Origin: Bugula neritina
Taxonomy: Eukaryota; Animalia; Bryozoa
Assembly (NCBI GenBank): GCA_964035545.1
Contig: OZ037767.1
Span: 1,499,680 to 1,563,679, forward strand
DNA length: 64,000 nucleotides
Direction of reading: 5' to 3'
This document shows positions 5,755-30,400 of the stretch, one piece after another. Both the position numbers and the translations under genes were made by a program. Position 1 is the first letter of the stretch. Every line of letters starts with the position of its first letter. A model generated the notes under the pieces. That model worked only from the letters and a program-made list of their open reading frames with translations, was not told the origin of the DNA and ran no database searches.

Positions 5755-8700
5755 ATGGTGGACGACCTTCCAATTACTGGTTTGTGTATTGTGGAGCAAA
5801 CATGTCCGCCTGGTTACGTCATGGTAGGTCTTGTCGTCTTGCACGAGCCATTCTCTCTGTTAAATGCCTTGAAGTTTAAACACATTTGGTTAGAGTTGCG
5901 CTTCTTTAATTCGTTTTACTTGAAGAAATGGGTTTTTGTACGTAAAGTTATTGTTTAGCAAATTACCCAAATTCACAAGTCTCACCTCATGTGTTTGCAC
6001 TTTAATATTGTGTATTATCTCGTTTCAGATAGACAAATGTGAGGACAACTCTAGAGCCGAAGCTGACTTGTGGAAAGACCAGTTTTTTGCGAAGAAAGTC
6101 AAGAGATTTCTTTGTATTACTAGAGTTTTCCCATTAGCCCAGGTAAAGTTGCATTTATTCGGTGCGTAGATATAAATTACTGATGCTACTACTGTATGCA
6201 GGTATAAATTACTGATGCTACTACTGTGTGCAGGTACAAATCACTGCTACTACTACTGTGCGCAGGTATAAATTACTGCTGCTACTACTGTGCGCAGGTA
6301 TAAATTACTGATGCTACTTCTGTACGCAGGTACAAATTACTGCTGCTACTACTGTGTACAGGTGTAAACCCCATATTTAGGTTTCTATTAGCTGCTGTCA
6401 TAGGTTTGTAAGTTATGTTCTCAGTAAAGTTGTATAGTTGATTCTATGATGTACCTTATTTCTATTCAACTGACTTCTGAATGTAAGTGCTCTGATCTAC
6501 TAGCAGAGCTCTGAGGCTAAGTTTTGAATGAACCCACTCTTTGCTAAGCTAAATATTTTACGATTGGGGAAGTGTAAGACAGCTGCGTTGTTTCTGATCG
6601 AATCACTTACTAGTAACAGTCTATCCTGTATAATAAGCAGTAGGCAATGAAATCAACGTGTGGAGCGTTTGTAAGAGCATAGAAAACTACTGAAAGTCAT
6701 TTCCTCATCTGTCTCCCAAGCATTCGTGTGCATGTCTACTCTTTTACACACAGTTTGTGAAAGCTTTGAACATAAATGTGGATGTCAAGTTAACCTTTGT
6801 TTTGCAGGGCACACTGAACAATGTCTTAGTAGATGTTTGTTTACACGATGAAAAGGAGCTTCCACCCGCAGGTTAGACTCTGTTCTAGAATATGCTATGT
6901 TATGATATGTTGTATTTATGTCTGCTGATACGAGGCTCAACTATCTAGTCATTATCTCCTTTCACATGGGGATAAAACTTATTAGCATTTCTTATCACCA
7001 CCGTATATATTGGTGTTATTATATTTGCACTGACAGTAACTTAAAATGGCATTTTCAGAATAAGTAATTATGTTGTATATTCAATTACTGATATATTGGA
7101 TTTAGGCAAAATCATAAACATTTTTAGATTAAGCACTTGTGATTATATAAATATACTGAGATATCACAGTCAGATGAAAATATAAACATATAAGCAGCAA
7201 GCATGCTGTATCACTCATTACCCGCTGTTTTCAGTCAGTTAGTTTATATATCAGATAGAATGTTGTATCACTCAATGCAGGGTTCAGCACGATATCCACC
7301 TGTCAAGACACACAGGAAATGGCTCTGAAAAAGAGGCTCATGAGTGTGAAGCTTATTCCCAGAGACCAGACCTCCAATGCTATCAACGATCTCCAGTTTC
7401 TTAGTAAAGCTAGAAAAGCACCTCCTGGGTACACACTTGTCGGGTAGGCAGGATTTGTCCTCCCTTTCTGTATTTAGATATCGTAGTCTGATTTGTCTCC
7501 TCTTTCTTTTTTTACTACAGACTGTTTAGATGTTATTTTAGTGTAATGAGTTTTATAGAACCTGAGTTTCTTTTAATTATAATGGTTTTGTTGTTGTAGA
7601 GAGATCAATGGACTGTTGTTATGTTATCGGTTTGGGCCAGTACCCAATAGCACCCCACCTCCAGTTCCACCAAGGTACTCTTCTATCTACTAGATACTAG
7701 GCCAGACTTAATGCTAATTTTGTTACAGATAGATTTCGTAGGCACCGGCCATTATTGATGCCCAGGCTTATGAACGAAAAGTTAACTGTTCGTTTTAACT
7801 GAGTAGTGTGATGGTGTTTGTGAGAATTCATCAAATATGGAATTCTAGAGCTTTTTAAATAGTTTACCATTTTTTATTTTTAAAAACATGATTTAAATTA
7901 TAAGGTAATGGCAAGCTTACCTTTCATTTAAAAGTAGTAGTGGAGAAATTTAGATAGCTTAAATTCTTTAATTTTATGATTAAATTTTGGTTTTGGATGC
8001 GAGTTGAACTTCTCGCGACAATATAACTTTTTATGCTACATTTCTAATATAGAACACAGGCTTTTCGCAATTTCTCCATTATTGCACCTGCCTCTTTTAC
8101 TGAAAGAATAGATTTTGTAGCTGAAAAAGTTGCTGGCTCATTAATGGATGAATAATTTATTTCAGACTGTGTGAGTCACTGTGACTGAGTGAGTTATTGA
8201 TACTGAGTGAGTTATTGATACTGAGTGAGTCGCTGTGACTGAGTGAGTTACTGAGTGAGTTACTGATACTGTGTGAGTCACTGTTACTGAGTGAGTTACT
8301 GATACTGAGTGAGTTACTGATACTGAGTGAGTTATTGATCCTGTGTGAGTCACTGTTACTGAGTGAGTTACTGATACTGAGTGAGTTACTGATACTGAGT
8401 GAGTTACTGATACTGAGTGAGTTATTGATCCTGTGTGAATAGAGTAGCCTAATTGCTGATAATTTTGTATCATTAAAGTCAAGAACATTCTAGATCATTT
8501 TTCTCCTGTTGCAGTTACTCCATAGCCACCAAAAATACGGTTTACACAAGTATTGGCCACGGGTAAAGTTGGTATAGGTTTGCCGTGCTCTCACAGCGAA
8601 CACTAATCGTAATTTATGTTATTAGTCCTGTGTGACAGGGTACTTTTGTGTTTGTTCACTTTGTTATGAGTCTGTGTGACAGTCATACATCTGCCTACAT

Positions 8701-19980: not shown

Positions 19981-20220
19981 TGTGTGGATCATTTTTCAAA
20001 CATTTAGTACATAGCGGCTGAGAGATATAAAAATATACTTTACATCCTTTTCATTATTAATCTAATTTATTATTTACCTCAATTTATAATTTGCATTTAT
20101 TGTCCTATAATAATACTGATGCAACTGTGCGAAATTTATGTTATTGCATATACAATATTAAAGATATACATAACAAAGATGCTGAAGATTGCAAATTCAT
20201 TCTGTCATTAGGAATCTCGA

Positions 20221-20315
20221 AGCCCTTGTAGTGTAGTAAGTAGTTGGTTACCTAGCGTGCCTGCTTGCAAGGGAAGGGGGTCTGCGGCTCGAAACCCGGT
20301 GAGGGCAATTATTTT
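20221..20315 (+). mobile_element. tRNA-derived SINE head (family B), degenerate
   Basis: GCCCTTG...TGAGGGC acceptor-like stem, A-box-like TAGTGTAGT..TGGTT, B-box-like GGCTCGAAACCC; similar to 29425-29495. Confidence 0.55.
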
Positions 20316-20589
20316 ACACAGTCAAAAAGTAATTACATAATTTAGTTCCTTTAATTAAGTTAATTTATTTTCAATATGTTGTTTATGTAATCAAAATGTC
20401 TATCTGAATTTTATCAGAATAATTACTCACTATCGCTAAATTCTTGTCTTAGCCTCAGCAGGTGCTGTAAGTGCACTTATTACATAGGTCCTTGGGCTAA
20501 TGTATAGCTCGGGCTCTAACTTATTCATAGACTGATTTTGCATATATGCTTGTAATACAAGCCTTGACTATATTTAACTTTGCATTAGA

Positions 20590-20786
20590 AACTCACTCAA
20601 ATTTATAGTTGCTGTCCTGGGGAAAATTTCTGAAAGAAAAGGTTTTTTTAAAGCGATTGTAATTAAGGATTTATTCATATATGTAAAACTGGATGTTCTC
20701 CTTAACATCTCAGATGGTCTTTGGGCTCGACCCTTGACCTCGTGTTTACTAGGCCAGTGCTCTAACCTCTACAGCACAGCTGACCC
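20590..20786 (-). mobile_element. tRNA-derived SINE (family A), degenerate copy
   Basis: Aligns by eye over ~190 bp with 26113-26320 (ACTGGATG.TCT.C.TAACATC, TGACCTCGTGTTTAC, GAAA.GGTTTTT). Confidence 0.7.
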
Positions 20787-21231
20787 CTCAATCAGCATCA
20801 AACTTATGCAATATGTTTACTAGATTTCAGTAGATATAAGATTCATTCAAGATTCAGTCACAGAACTCCTTCTACTTAGTGCAAGTATTTATGTTCTCTA
20901 ACTGATTATACATGATTCATATTTCAATAAATGTTTATTAATATTCTGTTGCTTGTTGAATTATATAGTTATGTGCTAAGTTTACAATTTAATAAAGACC
21001 TGCCTTACTGTATTTGCAGAAGCAAAACACAAAAAGGGTTTCCATCTGTCAACAGTAATTTATTATTGCCTCTGCAGATATAGCCATTGAAAAAAAACAA
21101 AATGGTATTTGAGTTTTCATATTGAAGTAGGGATAGTATGAAATACAAGTAAAGACATAAAGACATTCCACGGTTTGAAAAGGACATGTATACAAGCTCT
21201 CGACAAATTTATGACTTTTACTAGTTTCTGC

Positions 21232-22790
21232 TTACTTTCCTGGCGTTAGGGTTGCTGGCAACAAGCCAATTGGGCTTACAATCTGAAAAGGTGAACAGCA
21301 GCAGTCACTGGGGAATCGGACCCAGCGAAATGCTATGGAGGTTGCTCGGAACACCAGAAGTCTTACGTAGGCCCATTTCTGCACACAGCGCCCCTTCCAG
21401 AACACAACTTTCTGTCGTGGACACCTGCCCCTTCTTCTAGACCTTTGATGTAGTGGCTGTGGTGTAGAAACCTGCATATAGTTCACATCACAACGTCAAT
21501 TTCTTGCAAGTCAAAAAGGCATAATTTGTACATAGAGAAACTAGTTTACAAGCTCACCTGTCCTTGGCAGCCCTTAGTAAGACAAGTACGAGTCAAGTAA
21601 CCTTGCAAAAAGTAAACAGGTTGAAATACGCCCCATAATTGTCCTCGTATCCATACACTGTTTGGCTTCTCAAACAAGGAGCTCACTGGACACCATCCAA
21701 TGCTGTGATGTGAAATAACACAGAAATATAAACATATAAATATAAATATATTATTTTGGTTCATATATAGTTATAGAATATTATACAATGCATTTAGACT
21801 GTCATTTACTTTATCAATTTGTCCAGTAGAGTATATACTATGTATTTATAATGGTTGAACTTTGAACTTTGCACTTACAAGGAAGTAGCTGTAGCCTCAG
21901 GAGTTACAATACTTGAAATTCCTCGGCCTTCTGCAGATTCGGAAGCCTGAAAATATTGTGCAATGTTGGTAGAGCACAGTCTAAATGGTCCATGTAATTA
22001 TATCATTAGAAGTCTGCAAACTAACCATCATAATATTTATAAAAGAATTTGCTAGAAGTAGTATGTAGTAGTTCATCTTTTTCACATATAATTATAACTT
22101 AAACTATTAATGTTTTTATATCAGGTAGACTTGTTATACCATTTCTTCAAATAAAATGGTCTTAACATTTTCTGTAGAGCAAAATTATTAGTATGATTTG
22201 TTAGCAGTGCAAAACATGTATAGTATTATTACTGTAGCCCAACTTATGATCATGATTATGCATGATTATGGTATAAACTACCGAAAGAAGAGCTCTCATG
22301 CTTTCTAGTTGCTTTGAGACTTCGCTAGTCTGAGGCACCAGGACAGTGCAGGCACCAGTAGATGTGGCTGGGTCACCCGGTGAACCATCACTCCTTGGTT
22401 CTAAGGTACAAGTAGAGCTCTCGTCTGGAGGGGGTGGAAGGGGTGCAGGTGTGATGGGTTGTACGATCACTTGGCAATAGGAGACTGCCACTAATGACAC
22501 TATCACTACTAGCTAAAAGCACACATGTGAAGATAACTTAAGAACTTATCATAATTCATTGTTAACAGTCTATGTACATATTAAATATCCTATAGATCTC
22601 AAAACAGTTGAATTTATTTCCTATTCAATATCATAGGAAGTTCTATTCAACTACATACTAGTCAATAAAGTACAAATTTCTTCGAGGCTAACAGAATTAT
22701 TCCTGCACCAACTTACGTTAGAGTAAAGCAGTAGATATTGTAACAGTAAATATAATCTGTACTCACAGGAAAGATGGCAGCCCTTGCCAT
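21232..22790 (-). CDS. Secreted Spaetzle/neurotrophin-like cystine-knot precursor, paralog 1. Exons 22790-22767, 22512-22282, 21946-21879, 21702-21558, 21471-21232; 235 aa
   Basis: Signal peptide MARAAIFPLVVIVSLVAVSYC; prodomain ending near AEGR; C-terminal domain WCP..W...W.V.Q....Q......C....C ... C.QK...VRLLV......W..FPSDCCC fits the Spaetzle-type cystine-knot pattern. Exon phases match paralog 2. Confidence 0.8.
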
Positions 22791-22843
22791 TCTGTGGTGT
22801 TTCCTGTTGACGAAATACTGGTTTAGAGAATTGCTTTTCTGAC

Positions 22844-22850
22844 TTTTATA
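22844..22850 (-). promoter_or_regulatory. TATA box (TATAAAA) of cystine-knot paralog 1
   Basis: Canonical TATAAAAG ~55-60 nt upstream of the ATG, conserved at the same position in paralog 2. Confidence 0.7.
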
Positions 22851-23717
22851 AGACTTTCAGGGTTACTTCTACCAATGAGATCTAAATTGTAAGATTAGAA
22901 ACCTGCACCAGAGCGTACCTATTAGGTAATCAATTAATTTTTTTGTCAGTATTTCCACTCTACATGATGCCAGATCTCCAGGGTCTACATGATGCTGTGT
23001 TATATTTATTTTCTGACAAATTTCACTTCCATATCTCCCTTTTTTGCTCAATTTATGCTCCATAATGCCTAATAATACAGGTATTACTCTCTGCTAAAAT
23101 ATTTTGCATTATTAAAAATTTTAAAGCGCTGTTTTGTTTACATGCACACTTCCAACAATATGTGCTACAAAAAACTAACAACAAAGACATTTGAAAATGT
23201 ATCTTTGAGCTGTCATTTAACAAACATAGCAAACATAGGCGACATTTTTCATTCAGTACCCAATTTATTTACTTTCTGATGTACATAGTAAGTAGTATGT
23301 TACATAGCCTCAAAGGATATCGAGATATCTAAAGCCTCACATGTCCATGTATGCTTGCCACTGTTGGTATATATATTTTTTTCGCTACCCAAACAGGACA
23401 AAGCAGAGATAGGTGAGGATAGGTGAGAAAAAAATATTTTGCAGCTACATGCAAGTTCAAGTTGCTGCTTCTAATTGTCAGGTCAAGCTTCTCAAGTGCT
23501 ACCTGTCACATCACGGTCAAAAAGTATGCGTGTCTGCAGTAATTTTTTCCACTCAAATCTAAACCATCCCATAAGTTTGGTCTATAAGTGTCTTTTATTA
23601 AATGTAATGAAGAAATATTTATTAATGTGGTTTCAGTGAGAGACTTGGTACAGTCTGGTACAAGAATTTCTAATCCCATGCCCCAAATCTGATTGGTAGA
23701 AGTAACCATGAATGTCA

Positions 23718-23724
23718 TATAAAA
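23718..23724 (+). promoter_or_regulatory. TATA box (TATAAAA) of cystine-knot paralog 2
   Basis: TATAAAAGTCAGAAAA is identical to the reverse complement in paralog 1. Confidence 0.7.
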
Positions 23725-23784
23725 GTCAGAAAACCAATTCTCTAAACCAGTATTTCATCTACAATCAACAGGAAACACCAAAAA

Positions 23785-25606
23785 ATGGCAAGGGCTGCCA
23801 TCTTTCCTGTGAGTACAGATTATATTTACTGTTACAATATCTACTGTTTAACTCTAATGTTGTTTAAGTTGGTGCAGGAATAATTCTGTTAGCCTCAAGC
23901 AAATTCATACTTTATTAACTAGTATGTAGTTAAATAGAACTTCTTATGTTGAGATCTATAGAATATTTAATATAAACATAGACTGTTGACAATGAATTCT
24001 TGTAAGCTCTTAAGTTACCCTGACATGTGTGATTTTAGTTAGTAGTGATAGTGTCATTAGTGGCAGTGTCACATTGCCAAGACGACAGCTCCACCTGTAC
24101 CTTAGAACCAAGGAGTGATGGTTCACCGGGTGACCCTGCCTCATCTACTGGCCCCTGCACTGCTCAGGTTGCACAGACTAGCGATGTCGCTGCCCAAATA
24201 GAAAGCATGAGAACTGTCCTGACGGTAAGAAATACAAGGTCAAGGTTACTGTTGTGTTAAGATCTTTAGGGACATGCATGAAGTGATCCAGAGCTGTAGT
24301 ATTCAACTTATAAATTATGATAGTTTTACAAGCTGATAGCCACTAATTTTTATTTTCGTGTTATATAGCTGATATATATATATCATTATAATGCACACAC
24401 TTCTTAAAATAATAACTTTTGTCAAGTAGATTTGTATATTTTCTTTTTTTACAAAAGTATATTTAATAGATCTGCAAATATAATGTGATGAAAACTATTA
24501 TATAAGTTTATGGAAACAAACAATTATAATATAGTAAGAAAATACCTCTTCGTCCACATATATTTTGAATATAACTTCAATATGCTCAATTACACTTCAT
24601 ATTTACCAATCATATTTACATATGTTTACATCCTTTGTAACACATTTTATTACGAGTTGATTCCAACCGTTCATAGAGCTGTGTAACATACACGTCAGGT
24701 TTACTTTTGAATAAATCGTGTCAGGGAGTATCAGTTTTTCCCTATGCCACACCTCTTTGGTAAGTTTAGTTTTAAATCAAGCCAAGTTTAAGAGGACATA
24801 ACTTCTCATAAGGCTTTTTTTGAAGGGATCTGATACTGCAGAGGGTAGAGAACCATCGAGTGTCGACACGTCTGCTAGGAGCAGACCAATCAGCTTACTT
24901 CCTGTATCACCACTGTGAGTACATAACTCCAACTATTACATCCACTGTGAGTACATAACTCCAACTATTACATCTACTGTGAGTACATAACTCCAACTAT
25001 TACATCCACACATGTTCACACTCACACACATTCACTCACACACACTCACACACATATAATAAATGAAGCAAGTTTTAACATTTGTTAGGCTTGGCTATAA
25101 CACTGCAAGCCTCTTATAAACTATGGAGTGACATTTGTGTACTCACAATATATTTTATTTCCACCAGTGTTTCCTGGTGTCCCACAACGCCTGCTTTCAA
25201 CCAACCATCAACTGTTTGGATAGCTGGACAACTGTGGGGGGTAGTGCAGACGTCCTTTTTCAGACAAGGCCACAATGAGAGGATCTGTAGGACCACGGAA
25301 TGCAGGGGACGTGTATGTATTATTAAGATATACTAATTGAACTCATTTCAAATCAGCAGATATGTGAAACAATGTCTAATATTTATGTTTATATGGTAGG
25401 CTGCTCAACCGAGACGAGGGAGAAGATGTACGAGACCGAGGCCAGTATTCTGGAGAGGAGCTTGCATACAGAAGTATGTGTGGGTGAGACTGCTGGTGTA
25501 TAGAGGCACCATGCTAAGATGGCGCTACGTTCGCTTCAGAAGTGACTGCTGCTGCACTCCATACCGAATCAACTCATTGCCAATTGCTGGGCCAATCCTT
25601 GGATAG
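23785..25606 (+). CDS. Secreted Spaetzle/neurotrophin-like cystine-knot precursor, paralog 2. Exons 23785-23808, 24039-24224, 24826-24914, 25168-25312, 25400-25606; 216 aa
   Basis: Same leader (MARAAIFPLVVIVSLVAVSHC) and AEGR; WCPTTPAFNQPSTVWIAGQLWGVVQ...ICRTTECRG ... CIQKYVWVRLLVYRGTMLRWRYVRFRSDCCC. Exon 4 is 145 nt in both paralogs. AATAAA at 25768. Confidence 0.8.
24910..25008 (+). repeat. 32-bp tandem repeat x3 (CCACTGTGAGTACATAACTCCAACTATTACAT) that duplicates the exon 3 donor of paralog 2
   Basis: Visible; first copy contains the real CT|GTGAGT junction at 24914/24915. Confidence 0.9.
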
Positions 25607-26112
25607 AATACAATTCCTAGGCCAATCTTAGAAGAGAATATAATGTACTCTGATATATTATATAATTTTGGCATTTGTATTACAATGTTTTCTATTACGG
25701 TTTGATATTATGGTGATATGATAAATATAAATGTATAAAGTCTAAAACACAACTTGATTTTTTTGAAAATAAATAGGAAAAGCACCTGCCACTACTACCT
25801 GCCACTATTTGTCAACTTTGAGCAGAGAGTCTCAGTCTAGTAGCCAATAACCCATAATTTATTGTTAATACAAGTTTAGCTAATGAAATTTGTATTAGTT
25901 TTATAATGTGTGCGAAATGGAATCAGTGTCATATCTGGTGGTGGTGGTGGACTACTTCAGCAGGTACATTGTCGCTGAAAGGTTGCAGGATCATGTGATC
26001 ATACTATTACAAAATCTTTACTCACGATGCTATAATAAAACATAATATGCTACAAATCAGTAGCCTGTATATTATATGGTTCAAATTCTAGTGAAAAACT
26101 TTTCACATAAAA

Positions 26113-26320
26113 AATCTCACGCAAGCTTATAGCCGCCATCCCTGTGAAAAACCTCTGATAGAAAGGGTTTTTGTTAGAACCGGCTAAGGACTTGTTTAGA
26201 TGAGGCACAGGAGCAATTATGACTGGATGCTCTTCCTAACATCACCAATGACCTTTGTCGGGGTTCGAACCCATGACCTCGTGTTTACAAAGCAAATGCC
26301 CTGACCCCTCACATAAGCAC
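26113..26320 (-). mobile_element. tRNA-derived SINE (family A), best-preserved copy
   Basis: Minus strand has B-box GGGTTCGAACCCC followed by core GATGTTAGGAAGAGCATCCAGTCATAATTGCTCC; homologous to 20590-20786 and 28420-28527. Confidence 0.75.
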
Positions 26321-27465
26321 ATGGAAATATCCCATGCAGCAAATTTTCCAAATTTAAAACCAAATTTAATTTGTGGTCTAATTTGCAAGATTTATAAAAT
26401 GACCAAAATCCAAATTTCAGGATACTCGAAATTCATCATGTGTAACTGTTGGAATGCAATGTAACCCTTAGAGACATCAAATGAAACGTACACTAAACTG
26501 TAACTTTGACGACTATACTTAAATATTAATAAGAACGACTGTATAACTGATCAACATCTGGTGAGGTTTGAAGAAGTCTTGGTTTGATTTTCTAATTTTT
26601 TAAGCTGCTTATAAAAGTTATGAAAGAAGTTTTCTATCGCAAGATAAACTAGAAAAACATTAACCTATATAATTATAATTGAACTATATTTTGGTTACAT
26701 TGACTTGAGTTTAACACAACTATGCATGGCAAACTTGGGACCAAAAATATCATGAATGGTAAAAGCATTAGTATGAAACAACATGCAGTCAGTGTAGTTT
26801 AAAAATGCACAACATCAAAATACTCTTACAATAATATACTTAATCAGCACAGCAAGTAAAATACATAGTATTTAATTTTTACTGAAGAAAACAATCAACA
26901 TAGGCATTAAAGCATAATTTAAAATCAAAAGAAAATATACATCAACAGCATAACAACAAAAATACGAAATTAGAATATTTACATTTAGATAGTGAAATAG
27001 CCTATTTACATACTTGTAAAAATGTTACTACAGAGGGCACATTGGTCCACCCTTAAATCATAATAATCAAGCTAGAGAATGAAAACTAAAATGCACAAAA
27101 CCATATATAAGTGTTAACGAGATTCCAATCATCTACACAATTACTATAAAACTTCATTCTTTAAGTTATTAATATACAATATTATGATTGTATAAGCTAG
27201 CTATAGTTATGTATTGTATAATAAATATTTTTGGCACCCAAAATAAATTAAACTATTCCTATTAAATATCAATATTATGTAATTCATTATATTAGATGCA
27301 TATATTATTATTGTATAAATTTCAAAATATTTAAAATATAGATATCCCAGACAATACAATTGACAGGTGAACAGAGTTATTGCAACCCAAAGTAGACATA
27401 ATGTCACGAGATGATGTCGCATTGTAATGTCACGACGTAGTGTCACAGCATAATGTCACGCGGCC

Positions 27466-30400
27466 TTATATCACTACAGCTTGACGAATGTTATTGGCAG
27501 AAAAGTATCGTTGAGATTTGCCCAATTTCGGATTTGCCTTCTCTTGTTGACCCAATGCAGCAACAGATGGCGATTGTCGAAAAAGAGGAAGTGCACCAGC
27601 GGGCTCTGTTCGCACTGCAAATAAAAATTTTGCATTAGAGTTATCTACCCAATACTCCCGGTATATAAATTGATAACTCTTAAATATATCAGAAATACAA
27701 TCTCACAAATGAAGCCCTAGACAAGAGTCAAAGCGAGCAATTTAAAACTGCTTCCAGTCAATAAAATAATCAGTACAAATGTGACAATATTTTCAATAAA
27801 AATGAAACAATGGAAAAATTAAAATGAACAAATTGATATATAAACCCTACAAGTAACCTACCCACACTTTATTAAACCAACATTTATCAATGTGATGATG
27901 GAATCTTTCCCAAAGCAGTTCACTGGCAGATTTTTAGCAAGAAAACAATTGATGAAAGCTAAACAACTTTTGATCACATGTTATTTTAGTTCGTGTGAGC
28001 AAAGTTAGACAACTCTAACTAAACAGAAAAATTCCCATGGAAACTTCAATATTACAGCACATGAAGACATATACCTTTAGTGTTTGCGGCAGACGTACCA
28101 TCAGGTAGACACTGGGTCTGTGTGCACGCCGTGATCACATCGTTATAGTTGATGTCCCACGTGTACAGGGAGAGGGGCTGGACAGACTGCACCATCTCCG
28201 AGTGCAACCGTCTGTCTCCCATGACCTTTGACCTCAAGTATGAGTCACCGTGGTAGTATTTGTCCATCAGCTGAGCATTGTGTGTGAGGATGGATAGCCA
28301 AAAGTCTAAACACTGGTAGCTGTAACATGACAGTTATAAAACTTAGACTACAGGATTTGAAAAGAACGCAGCCGAGTTTGTGAGTCGAAAAAGTTTCAAC
28401 AAATTTACAAAAATATTAATCTGGTTAGAACGCCAGCTCAAGGTCATAAGTTCGAATTGTGATGATGTCAAGAAGGATAGCCAATCATAATTGCTCCCCT
28501 GTCACAGTCTAAATAGTCCTTAGCCTACTTTAAACTCTTACCATTACTGGTTCTAAATATAGACTAAATAAACTTGATTTGTTCATTATTCAAAAGGTTA
28601 TATGATTGCCTAAAAGTTGAGAGGAACAAAGTAGACCTACATTGTGCTTTCTTGGTATGACCAGGTCATTCAAGTAGTCAAAGTTATTTGTACTCAAAAT
28701 ATTTATAAGGGCAGAGCAAGCAGTTATTGATCAACAGCTATAAAAGCTTTTAGTCATATTTATAGAATACAATTAGCATGATAAATTTACAATAACTGTG
28801 TACTGAGTAAAGAGAAAGATGAAAGCAGCTGTTCTGGGTATACTATTCACTTTAGATCATCAATTAAATGGCCGACTTCCTGACCAATTAGCTAATATTG
28901 AGTTAACTGTTAGAGAATAGGAAAGCAGCAACTAAGGCACTGCACGGTAAACATAATAGTATTAAACTGCCCTTTAGCTATACAACTTGCCAATAGTTGA
29001 TTGCATTATTTCAACAAATGTAATATTTGAGAGGAATAAGTTTTTTTCAAGTCTCCAAAATCTTGTATCAAAAACATGTCATATAAACAAGCAGGAAGTA
29101 CCACAGTTGAATGAATCTATCCCGTGAAATGCACAACTGGAGCTAGTGATTTACCTTGTAAAGTCAGGCAAAAATTTGAAATAATTTGTGGTTTAATCTC
29201 AACTTACTTTAAGGTTCCGACGATAAAGAGACAAAGTTTTAGATTTGGGTCGTTGAGCCGGAACCCGGAAATCTCCTCAATGATCTGCGAGAATATGTTA
29301 GTCAACTTTCCTACAGAATATCATTAGAGGTCAATGTGAACCGTGAGATCCACAAAACACACTTTATACTGTTTAGAAGAGCAAAGCTGTATTACACAGT
29401 ACCATTAGTCACTATAAAACTTTTGTCCCCACTGGGATTGGAACCCGAGACCTCTGGTTTGCAAACAGGTGTGCTAACCATTACACCACAGGGACTATTG
29501 GGTAAACTCAACATTACAGTCACAATATTCCAATTGCATTACCTTTTACAGAGGACACAACTCTGCGACGGAAATATTAAGTACATTTTAGATTTTCTAA
29601 TAACCCCAACAACTATGTATCGTGTCACTTTTCATTATGTGAGATTGAAACGCCCTACATGTCTAGATTACATCACATCCTGTACAAACCTGCTGACAGT
29701 GCAGATTCCTCCACAATATCCCAGATGCTGACTCGGGTTCGTATTTTCCCAATGGCCACGCTGACTAGTTTATGAGACTTGAGGCCGGTACAGAGTACAC
29801 ACTCCAGTGCTGAGACGAACTTCCATATCAACAGCAGTAGATCCTGCTGATCACACGAGTTCTACAATTAGATATATTAGGTTCTATGATTAGAGCTACT
29901 AGGTTCTATAAAAAGAAATATTAAGTTGTGAAGCAAGTCCAAAATTATGCTTTTGTTTAAATATAAGGCTGAACATAAAGAGGAATATCTTTTGTTGAAT
30001 AACAATTATTACTATACAATAATATAGTTTAATATAATTATATACATAACACAATAAATTATATATCAACTTAGAGATATAATATTCAATAATGAAAACT
30101 AACTAATTGCTGGGCTGATGTGGACTGCTGATGTTTCACCAAACTGTCTGCCAACTCAATGCAGGTGACAACGTCTGCAATAAACCAGAATGAGATATTA
30201 TTCTACAGGTGAGATATCATTCTACAGGTGAGATATTATTCTACAGGTGAGATATTATTCTACAGATGATATATTACTCTACAGGTGAGATATTACTCTA
30301 CAGGTGAGATATTACTCTACAGGTGAGATATTACTCTACAGGTGAGATATTATTCTACAGGTGAGACTAGAATCAGATATTACTCTACAGGTGATATATT

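Follow-up and report, generated by a model that had tools for sequence, protein, structure and literature searches.

A head-to-head pair of divergent neurotrophin/Spaetzle-like genes with a shared 5' region in the bryozoan Bugula neritina

Gene structure of the pair

We have analyzed a stretch of 64,000 nucleotides (nt) from Bugula neritina (contig OZ037767.1 of assembly GCA_964035545.1, positions 1,499,680 to 1,563,679), which we call the window; coordinates refer to it unless another contig is named. It contains two genes, A and B, in divergent orientation, each coding for a protein with a C-terminal domain of the neurotrophin/Spaetzle type. Gene A lies on the minus strand, from 22790 to 21232 (235 codons), and gene B on the plus strand, from 23785 to 25606 (216 codons). 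The distance between their ATG codons is 995 bp. Both genes are kept intact by purifying selection, their mature domains differ in about half of their residues, and their promoters and leader regions are almost the same.

Reading both strands directly, the region is found to be eukaryotic DNA with short exons, and each gene has five of them. All eight introns have GT-AG boundaries, with phases 0, 0, 2 and 0 in both genes. The first-pass annotation of this DNA had described two divergent five-exon genes with their ATG codons 995 bp apart, identical intron phases and domains with eight cysteines (Cys), and our reading agrees with it in every detail.

In gene A, exon 1 (22767-22790) is an ATG and seven more codons, the start of the signal peptide, followed by a GTGAGT donor. 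It is identical to exon 1 of gene B (23785-23808). Exon 2 of gene A (22282-22512, 77 codons, 84% identical to exon 2 of B at the nucleotide level) codes for the rest of the signal peptide and for an acidic, proline-rich pro-region, and it ends in a weak donor, GTAGTT. Exon 2 of gene B (24039-24224) also codes for signal peptide and acidic pro-region. The two proteins begin with eight identical residues, followed by a hydrophobic, signal-like stretch: judged by eye, a basic start, 15 hydrophobic residues and then small residues. Exon 3 is short and ends in phase 2 in both genes, with 68 nt in A (21879-21946) and 89 nt in B (24826-24914), and it contains an AEGR motif.

The domain itself is coded by the last two exons, which hold all eight Cys of each protein. 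Exon 4 has the same length in both genes, 145 nt (21558-21702 in A, 25168-25312 in B). It codes for the N-terminal half of the domain, with a WCP motif and a C-x4-C motif. Exon 5 (21232-21471 in A, 25400-25606 in B) starts with a basic loop which includes the fourth Cys (Cys4) and the sequence RSRR in A or RGRR in B. It continues with the C-terminal half, which resembles neurotrophins, with the motif C-(I/V)-QK...VRLLV, and ends with SDCCC and the stop codon. Between the two proteins, identity is 48% for the part coded by exon 4 and 49% for that coded by exon 5.

Two features of the splice sites may be mentioned separately. At the start of exon 5 of gene A (21457-21471) there are two in-frame AG acceptors 15 nt apart, so that two isoforms with a difference of five residues are possible. 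In gene B, Tandem Repeats Finder detects a 32 nt unit repeated 3.1 times (24910-25009, plus strand, 97% matches) which triplicates the exon 3 donor. The result is three identical GTGAGT donors 32 nt apart, of which only the first keeps the frame and agrees with the known protein described below. This stretch gives a single BLAST match in the second assembly, which is consistent with fewer copies there.

Conservation in a second assembly

We have compared a profile of the exon 5 peptides from the five family members found in this genome with 1.84 billion cluster representatives, and obtained just two matches, P0001 and the representative of a cluster called P0002, which we discuss later. P0001 is KAF6038258.1, a "hypothetical protein EB796_003419" of 216 residues from an older assembly of Bugula neritina (GCA_010799875.2). 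It reproduces all four splice junctions of our model of gene B, including those of exons 1, 2 and 3, and is about 91% identical to it (19 of the 215 codons compared are different).

The contig which codes for P0001, L015, is collinear with the window from 20000 to 27500, with 84-86% nucleotide identity. It contains orthologs of both genes, also head to head, with their ATG codons 974 bp apart. All exons of A and B are open, and every splice site is kept with the exception of the exon 1 donor of A. Since the four junctions of gene B are reproduced in P0001 and both genes are intact under purifying selection in the assembly of L015, the two gene models are real and not a product of chance. The divergence from the window is too large for a simple allele. 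B. neritina is a species complex, and the origin of the window is probably in another of its members or in a close relative.

The selection acting on both genes was estimated by summing Nei-Gojobori counts per exon between the window and L015, with a one-sided Fisher test. For gene A, synonymous divergence (dS) is 0.222 and nonsynonymous divergence (dN) 0.036, a dN/dS of 0.16 (p 1.5e-10). For gene B, the values are 0.207, 0.050 and 0.24 (p 1.6e-6). Neither in A nor in B has any of the eight Cys of the domain changed, and only 2 of the 77 amino acids of exon 2 of gene A are different. From these ratios and from the unchanged Cys it follows that A and B are functional protein-coding genes and not decaying copies.

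The opposite view would be that at least one of them has no function, being a duplicate in decay or a mispredicted gene. Its arguments are the lack of an annotation for gene A in the older assembly and two weak donors in this gene: GTAGTT after exon 2 and, in L015, GC after exon 1. They are set against ten exons which are open in both genomes, with all other splice sites kept, against a dN/dS of 0.16 for A and 0.24 for B (p below 2e-6 in each case), and against the conservation of all Cys. The selection tests lead us to reject a pseudogene, and we find decay or misprediction hard to believe for either gene.

Some differences between the two assemblies are found next to gene B. Positions 25889-26012 of the window have no counterpart in L015. 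An adjoining short open reading frame (ORF), at 25906-26045, contains the motif VVVVDYFSRY, with a possible resemblance to the integrase core of retroelements. L015 has a long array of 13 nt repeats (7002-7538) which matches a stretch of only 24 nt in the window (25784-25807, with two GCCACTA copies). It resembles a microsatellite, and is far longer in the older assembly than in the window.

Similarity to neurotrophins and Spaetzle

The genes in the window were searched exon by exon, with P0001 as a full-length substitute for the product of B. The gathering cut-off is 27 bits for both of the relevant Pfam families, NGF (PF00243) and Spaetzle (PF16077). Exon 5 matches NGF with 24 bits in A (E 4.4e-5) and 25 bits in B (E 2.1e-5). 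Its match to Spaetzle is weaker, 16-21.5 bits (E 3.6e-4 for A). Exons 2 and 4 of either gene give no Pfam match. When the domain of the B ortholog is taken as a whole (P0001, residues 100-216), it reaches 28.0 bits with Spaetzle, covering positions 3-95 of the 96 in the model, and 27.0 bits with NGF.

A search of the PDB with the exon 5 profile matches 18 chains, all of them vertebrate neurotrophins. The best one is NT-3 (E 7e-5), in an alignment without gaps over 42 residues (NT-3 residues 74-115), where the first and third Cys of the CCC end fall on the C-x-C of neurotrophins. The same picture is obtained with the P0001 domain alone. Spaetzle was not matched in either of these two PDB searches. 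The spacing of Cys is also that of neurotrophins: a terminal C-x-C, 27 residues before it, which separate the equivalents of Cys80 and Cys108, and 11 residues between the equivalents of Cys68 and Cys80. The N-terminal Cys are assigned by position only. On the other hand, the features of Spaetzle are a CC-x-C end and seven Cys, while A and B end in CCC and have eight.

The genome also contains two canonical genes with an NGF domain, L006 (G000:C6:12814165-12814461) and L007 (G000:C3:29237127-29237435), single ORFs of 218 and 199 amino acids. They score 82-86 bits with Pfam NGF, and their domain is directly preceded by RSRR or RRRR. L006, with seven Cys and a C-x4-C-x-C motif, is the sole locus above the Spaetzle cut-off. 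An exon-wise scan of the genome detects no separate canonical Spaetzle. At least nine loci with TIR domains are present. A comparison by hhalign of the A/B family with the profiles of L006 and L007 gives an E value of 1.9e-4, with a probability of 47%.

The first-pass annotation had proposed a Spaetzle/neurotrophin-like cystine knot, and this proposal is supported. The Pfam comparison it suggested finds both NGF and Spaetzle, on exon 5 and on the C-terminal domain of the B ortholog, where the scores are at the cut-off. The matches in the PDB are exclusively with neurotrophins, and the predicted fold, described in the next section, is closest to NGF and NT-3. That A and B are real members of the neurotrophin/Spaetzle superfamily, nearer to neurotrophins in their C-terminal half and in their fold, is supported but borderline. 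They are too diverged to be filed cleanly in either of the two Pfam families.

Predicted fold

A model of the B ortholog domain (P0001, residues 95-216) was obtained with AlphaFold2 from an alignment of family fragments, without templates. It is all-beta, with a mean pLDDT (predicted local distance difference test) of 71 and values of 81-93 in the core blocks. The basic loop is disordered (model residues 55-69).

When the model is compared with known structures by Foldseek, neurotrophins occupy ranks 1-34 (E from 2.8e-4), coagulogen is rank 35 and Spaetzle is found at ranks 39-40 (E 0.17-0.26). The order is the same in VIA-align. Crystal structures of neurotrophins have Z values of 7.3-8.5 over 92-97 aligned residues, NGF and NT-3 being the best. 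Coagulogen has 6.5 (root mean square deviation 2.1 Å over 84 residues), Spaetzle 6.2 and IL-17 about 6. An NGF-type fold of the domain is thus supported by the model.

Related genes in this and other genomes

The family has five members in this genome: A, B, the single-copy gene L003 and a mirror pair of near-identical genes, L004 and L005. These last three genes have in common with A and B the five-exon plan, the phases around exon 4, seven columns of Cys and the SDCCC end. In fact, the Cys columns which do not vary in the family are these seven, and they include all three of CCC. The eighth one, Cys4 of the basic loop, is found in A and B only, and two other Cys are specific to the group of L003, L004 and L005. 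A and B differ from that group in the basic loop inserted into them, which carries Cys4 and a furin-type site, and in lacking the two extra Cys of the group. The two mirror pairs are also different: L004 and L005 are almost identical copies, while the mature domains of A and B are those of an old, diverged pair.

The P0002 cluster corresponds to ORFs of 70 amino acids, similar to exon 5 but with a GCCC end, in two contigs, L016 (2936-3720) and L017 (ENA ERZ4903326, SRA run SRR27482135). Upstream of this ORF there is an exon 4 of the WCP type, and exons of Pellino are found 3-5 kb from the CCC-family gene. In our genome, Pellino and the pair of A and B are found on one contig, separated by about 0.5 Mb. 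Since the two contigs have no DNA match to this genome, and their Pellino exon is only 71% identical to ours at the protein level, the CCC family is present in at least one other species. The best explanation of these results is that the branch of the neurotrophin/Spaetzle superfamily to which A and B belong is small, restricted to one lineage and recognisable by an SDCCC end that does not vary.

The inverted repeat and the history of the pair

The 5' parts of the two genes form an inverted repeat. Its left arm (22279-22881) contains the promoter, exon 1, intron 1 and exon 2 of gene A, and its right arm (23687-24227) the same parts of gene B. The arms are divided into five segments, I1 to I5, which are 83-95% complementary. 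A putative core promoter is found in segment I5 of each arm. That of gene A (22843-22876, minus strand) has a TATAAAAG box at 22850-22843 and a CCAAT box at 22872-22876. That of gene B (23692-23725, plus strand) has an inverted CCAAT at 23692-23696 and a TATAAAAG box at 23718-23725, 67 nt before the ATG. The near-identical TATA promoters reported in the first-pass annotation are real: they are about 88% identical over 84 nt, inside a 5' tract with 84-100% identity.

The identity between A and B changes abruptly along the genes. It is 85% in the 200 nt upstream of the ATG, 100% in exon 1, 90% in intron 1 and 84% in exon 2. Introns 2-4, on the other hand, are no more similar than shuffled sequences, and exons 3-5 are 64-68% identical in nucleotides, with about 48% protein identity in exons 4-5. 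Synonymous sites tell the same story: in exons 4-5 the proportion of differences (pS) is 0.82, which means saturation, against a dS of 0.36 in exon 2. Judging by this saturation the duplication of A and B is ancient, and a recent duplication of the whole gene is rejected for the same reason. Most likely, about 600 nt at the 5' end, from the promoter to exon 2, were homogenised by gene conversion between the arms of the inverted repeat. We have also compared the four arms of A and B in the two genomes. All pairs are 85-90% identical, and the informative sites group the arms by gene in 19 cases, by genome in 4, and in 5 cases they are crossed, each gene grouping with the paralogue of the other genome. 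The simplest account would place the conversion shortly before the split of the two Bugula lineages.

The similarity of promoters is one of the reasons to consider whether A and B might be partners in an obligate heterodimer: a ligand whose two chains would be expressed together, under matched promoters, and linked by the additional Cys in CCC. The leaders are nearly identical as well, and both the pair and its orientation are conserved in the second genome at a dS of about 0.2. The family has an odd number of invariant Cys, seven, so that one of them could stay free for a bond between chains. Moreover, neurotrophins are able to form mixed dimers: BDNF/NT-3 (1BND) and BDNF/NT-4 (1B8M) are among the structural and PDB matches of our domain. 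However, the homogenised tract includes intron 1, so gene conversion explains the match between promoters with no need of selection for co-regulation. The eight Cys of A, and those of B, could all be paired within the chain. The family includes a singleton, L003, and two near-identical copies, L004 and L005, which cannot be distinct subunits. Finally, the identity between A and B in the strands of the model (57%) is little above that in the loops (47%). A literature search found no publication on whether, in NGF, the dimer interface includes the residue that separates the last two Cys of the knot. Taken together, these arguments make an obligate heterodimer unlikely.

Charge and candidate cleavage sites

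The two parts of each protein have opposite charges. The pro-region is acidic, with a net charge of -6, while the mature domain has a net charge of +17 in A and also in B, and is rich in tryptophan (Trp), phenylalanine and arginine (Arg).

The first-pass annotation had assumed that the prodomain is cleaved before the knot, and this assumption has to be abandoned. In a scan of exons 2-3, R-x-[KR]-R is absent ahead of the first Cys in both A and B, so the usual maturation of neurotrophins does not apply. The sole furin-type motif, which reads RSRR in A and in P0001 and RGRR in B, is inside the knot. The third and fourth Cys flank the inserted loop that contains it, a part of the chain which is disordered in the model. 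This basic loop with its furin-type site is absent from the other members of the family, and looks like a 5' extension of exon 5. Another candidate is the (E/D)GR motif of exon 3, which is kept in A, B and both orthologs, the remainder of this exon being poorly conserved. Its single Arg, upstream of the knot, could presumably serve a serine protease, as in the activation of Spaetzle.

Such a charge raises the question of whether A and B are signalling ligands. They could be cationic effectors built on an NGF scaffold, either antimicrobial or similar to coagulogen, with clotting triggered by an internal cleavage. A mature domain of +17, rich in Arg and Trp, would be in agreement with this role, and so would a furin-type site which is found only in the knot, in a loop disordered in the model. 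Coagulogen is also the best structural match outside neurotrophins (Z 6.5, 2.1 Å, 84 residues). Against this explanation, the sequences are similar to neurotrophins and not to coagulogen, and the domain is under purifying, not diversifying, selection. We consider it unlikely.

Proposed explanation

We suggest that an old inverted duplication gave rise to A and B, and that their 3' halves, which code for the mature domain, diverged long ago. Homogenisation of the 600 nt at the 5' end would have come later, with conversion between the inner arms of the palindrome as its most likely cause. In each product, the signal peptide is followed by an acidic pro-region and then by a very basic domain, about 120 residues long, with an NGF fold. 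Both would be secreted, would form dimers similar to those of NGF and would act as extracellular ligands of a receptor. Their activity would be controlled by proteolysis, at the (E/D)GR of exon 3, at the furin-type site which the knot contains in its disordered basic loop, or at both. The structure of the genes, their conservation, the purifying selection, the class of fold and the pattern of conversion are results of our analysis, while the receptor, the role as a ligand, cleavage, dimers and secretion are inferences. As a whole, we regard this explanation as probable.

Several results weigh against it. The older assembly has no annotation for gene A, and exon 1 of the ortholog there (L015, 3992-4038) has a GC donor instead of GT. 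The protein collections searched contain no transcript-derived protein for A or B: a word search with P0001 recovers P0001 itself only, with no transcript-derived copy and no A-type protein in the collection, and a word search with exon 5 of gene A gives no match, although this query reached only proteins of 43-138 amino acids. The Pfam scores are at the threshold only for the excised domain, since the whole P0001 has 24.2 bits with NGF and 23.8 with Spaetzle. Exon 4 alone has no detectable similarity to neurotrophins, with no Pfam match and, in the PDB, nothing beyond chance-level matches to invertase (E 0.6). The model of the fold is of medium confidence, comes from an alignment of 14 rows of fragments, and corresponds to the ortholog of B instead of the protein in the window. 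Finally, there is no furin site before the first Cys, and the extreme positive charge could point to a role other than signalling.

A consequence of conversion is that A and B carry the same core promoter and the same leader, which makes their co-expression likely and mixed dimers possible, as far as sequence can tell. A bolder proposal combines several of these features: A and B would be made together as a mixed ligand of two chains, which would not lose a prodomain but be cut by a furin-type protease inside the knot, in the inserted basic loop, and held by the disulfides of the knot, with the middle Cys of CCC linking the subunits. We find this proposal very unlikely. If it were true, it would be a new activation route for a cytokine of the neurotrophin/Spaetzle type, and such a ligand might serve the Toll-like receptors of this bryozoan, where the exon-wise scan found no canonical Spaetzle.

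Comparison with known systems

An old family of secreted ligands with a cystine knot has two arms which are well studied, neurotrophins and Spaetzle. To our knowledge, the diversification of this family in lophotrochozoans is poorly known, and our literature searches found nothing about it in bryozoans. New features described here are the ancient duplication, the homogenised 5' tract, the furin-type site inside the knot, the charge of +17 and the CCC which is invariant in the family.

The locus of A and B is a conserved branch under selection which lies at the detection limit of both Pfam models, NGF and Spaetzle. It is also a clear case of partial gene conversion in a palindromic pair, where the regulatory and leader regions are matched and the mature domains are far apart. 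At present these results provide a useful annotation and some testable ideas, not the demonstration of a new mechanism. If the receptors and the cleavage of these proteins were worked out, they could show whether such ligands are used in a Toll-like or in a Trk/p75-like way in a colonial animal whose bacterial symbiont is well known.

Among other systems with two paralogous cystine-knot subunits, bursicon alpha/beta and GPA2/GPB5 are comparable to A and B, which are also possibly co-expressed. Nevertheless, they belong to different knot families, and the structural matches of our model to the beta chains of glycoprotein hormones are weak. Coagulogen, the clotting protein of horseshoe crabs, has an NGF-like knot and is in the same fold class as A and B (Z 6.5), and cleavage inside a disulfide-linked domain may be common to both, if A and B are cut where we suggest. 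It differs from A and B in having no match at the sequence level and in not being a dimeric ligand.

Spaetzle and the Drosophila neurotrophins (PF16077) are the ligands of Toll receptors. As in A and B, their domain is split by introns and has more Cys than the six of the knot, which is not preceded by a furin site. Nevertheless, their structural match to A and B is weaker than that of neurotrophins, and they end in CC-x-C, whereas A and B end in CCC.

The neurotrophins NGF, BDNF, NT-3 and NT-4 (PF00243) are secreted precursors with an NGF-type cystine-knot fold, as A and B would also be, and L006 likewise has the C-x4-C motif. A and B differ from them in several respects. Their knot is split by an intron, its N-terminal half is unrecognisable by sequence, and the Pfam score is just at the cut-off. 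The furin-type site is found in an inserted basic loop instead of before the knot, there are extra Cys (CCC and Cys4), and the charge is far higher than in neurotrophins.

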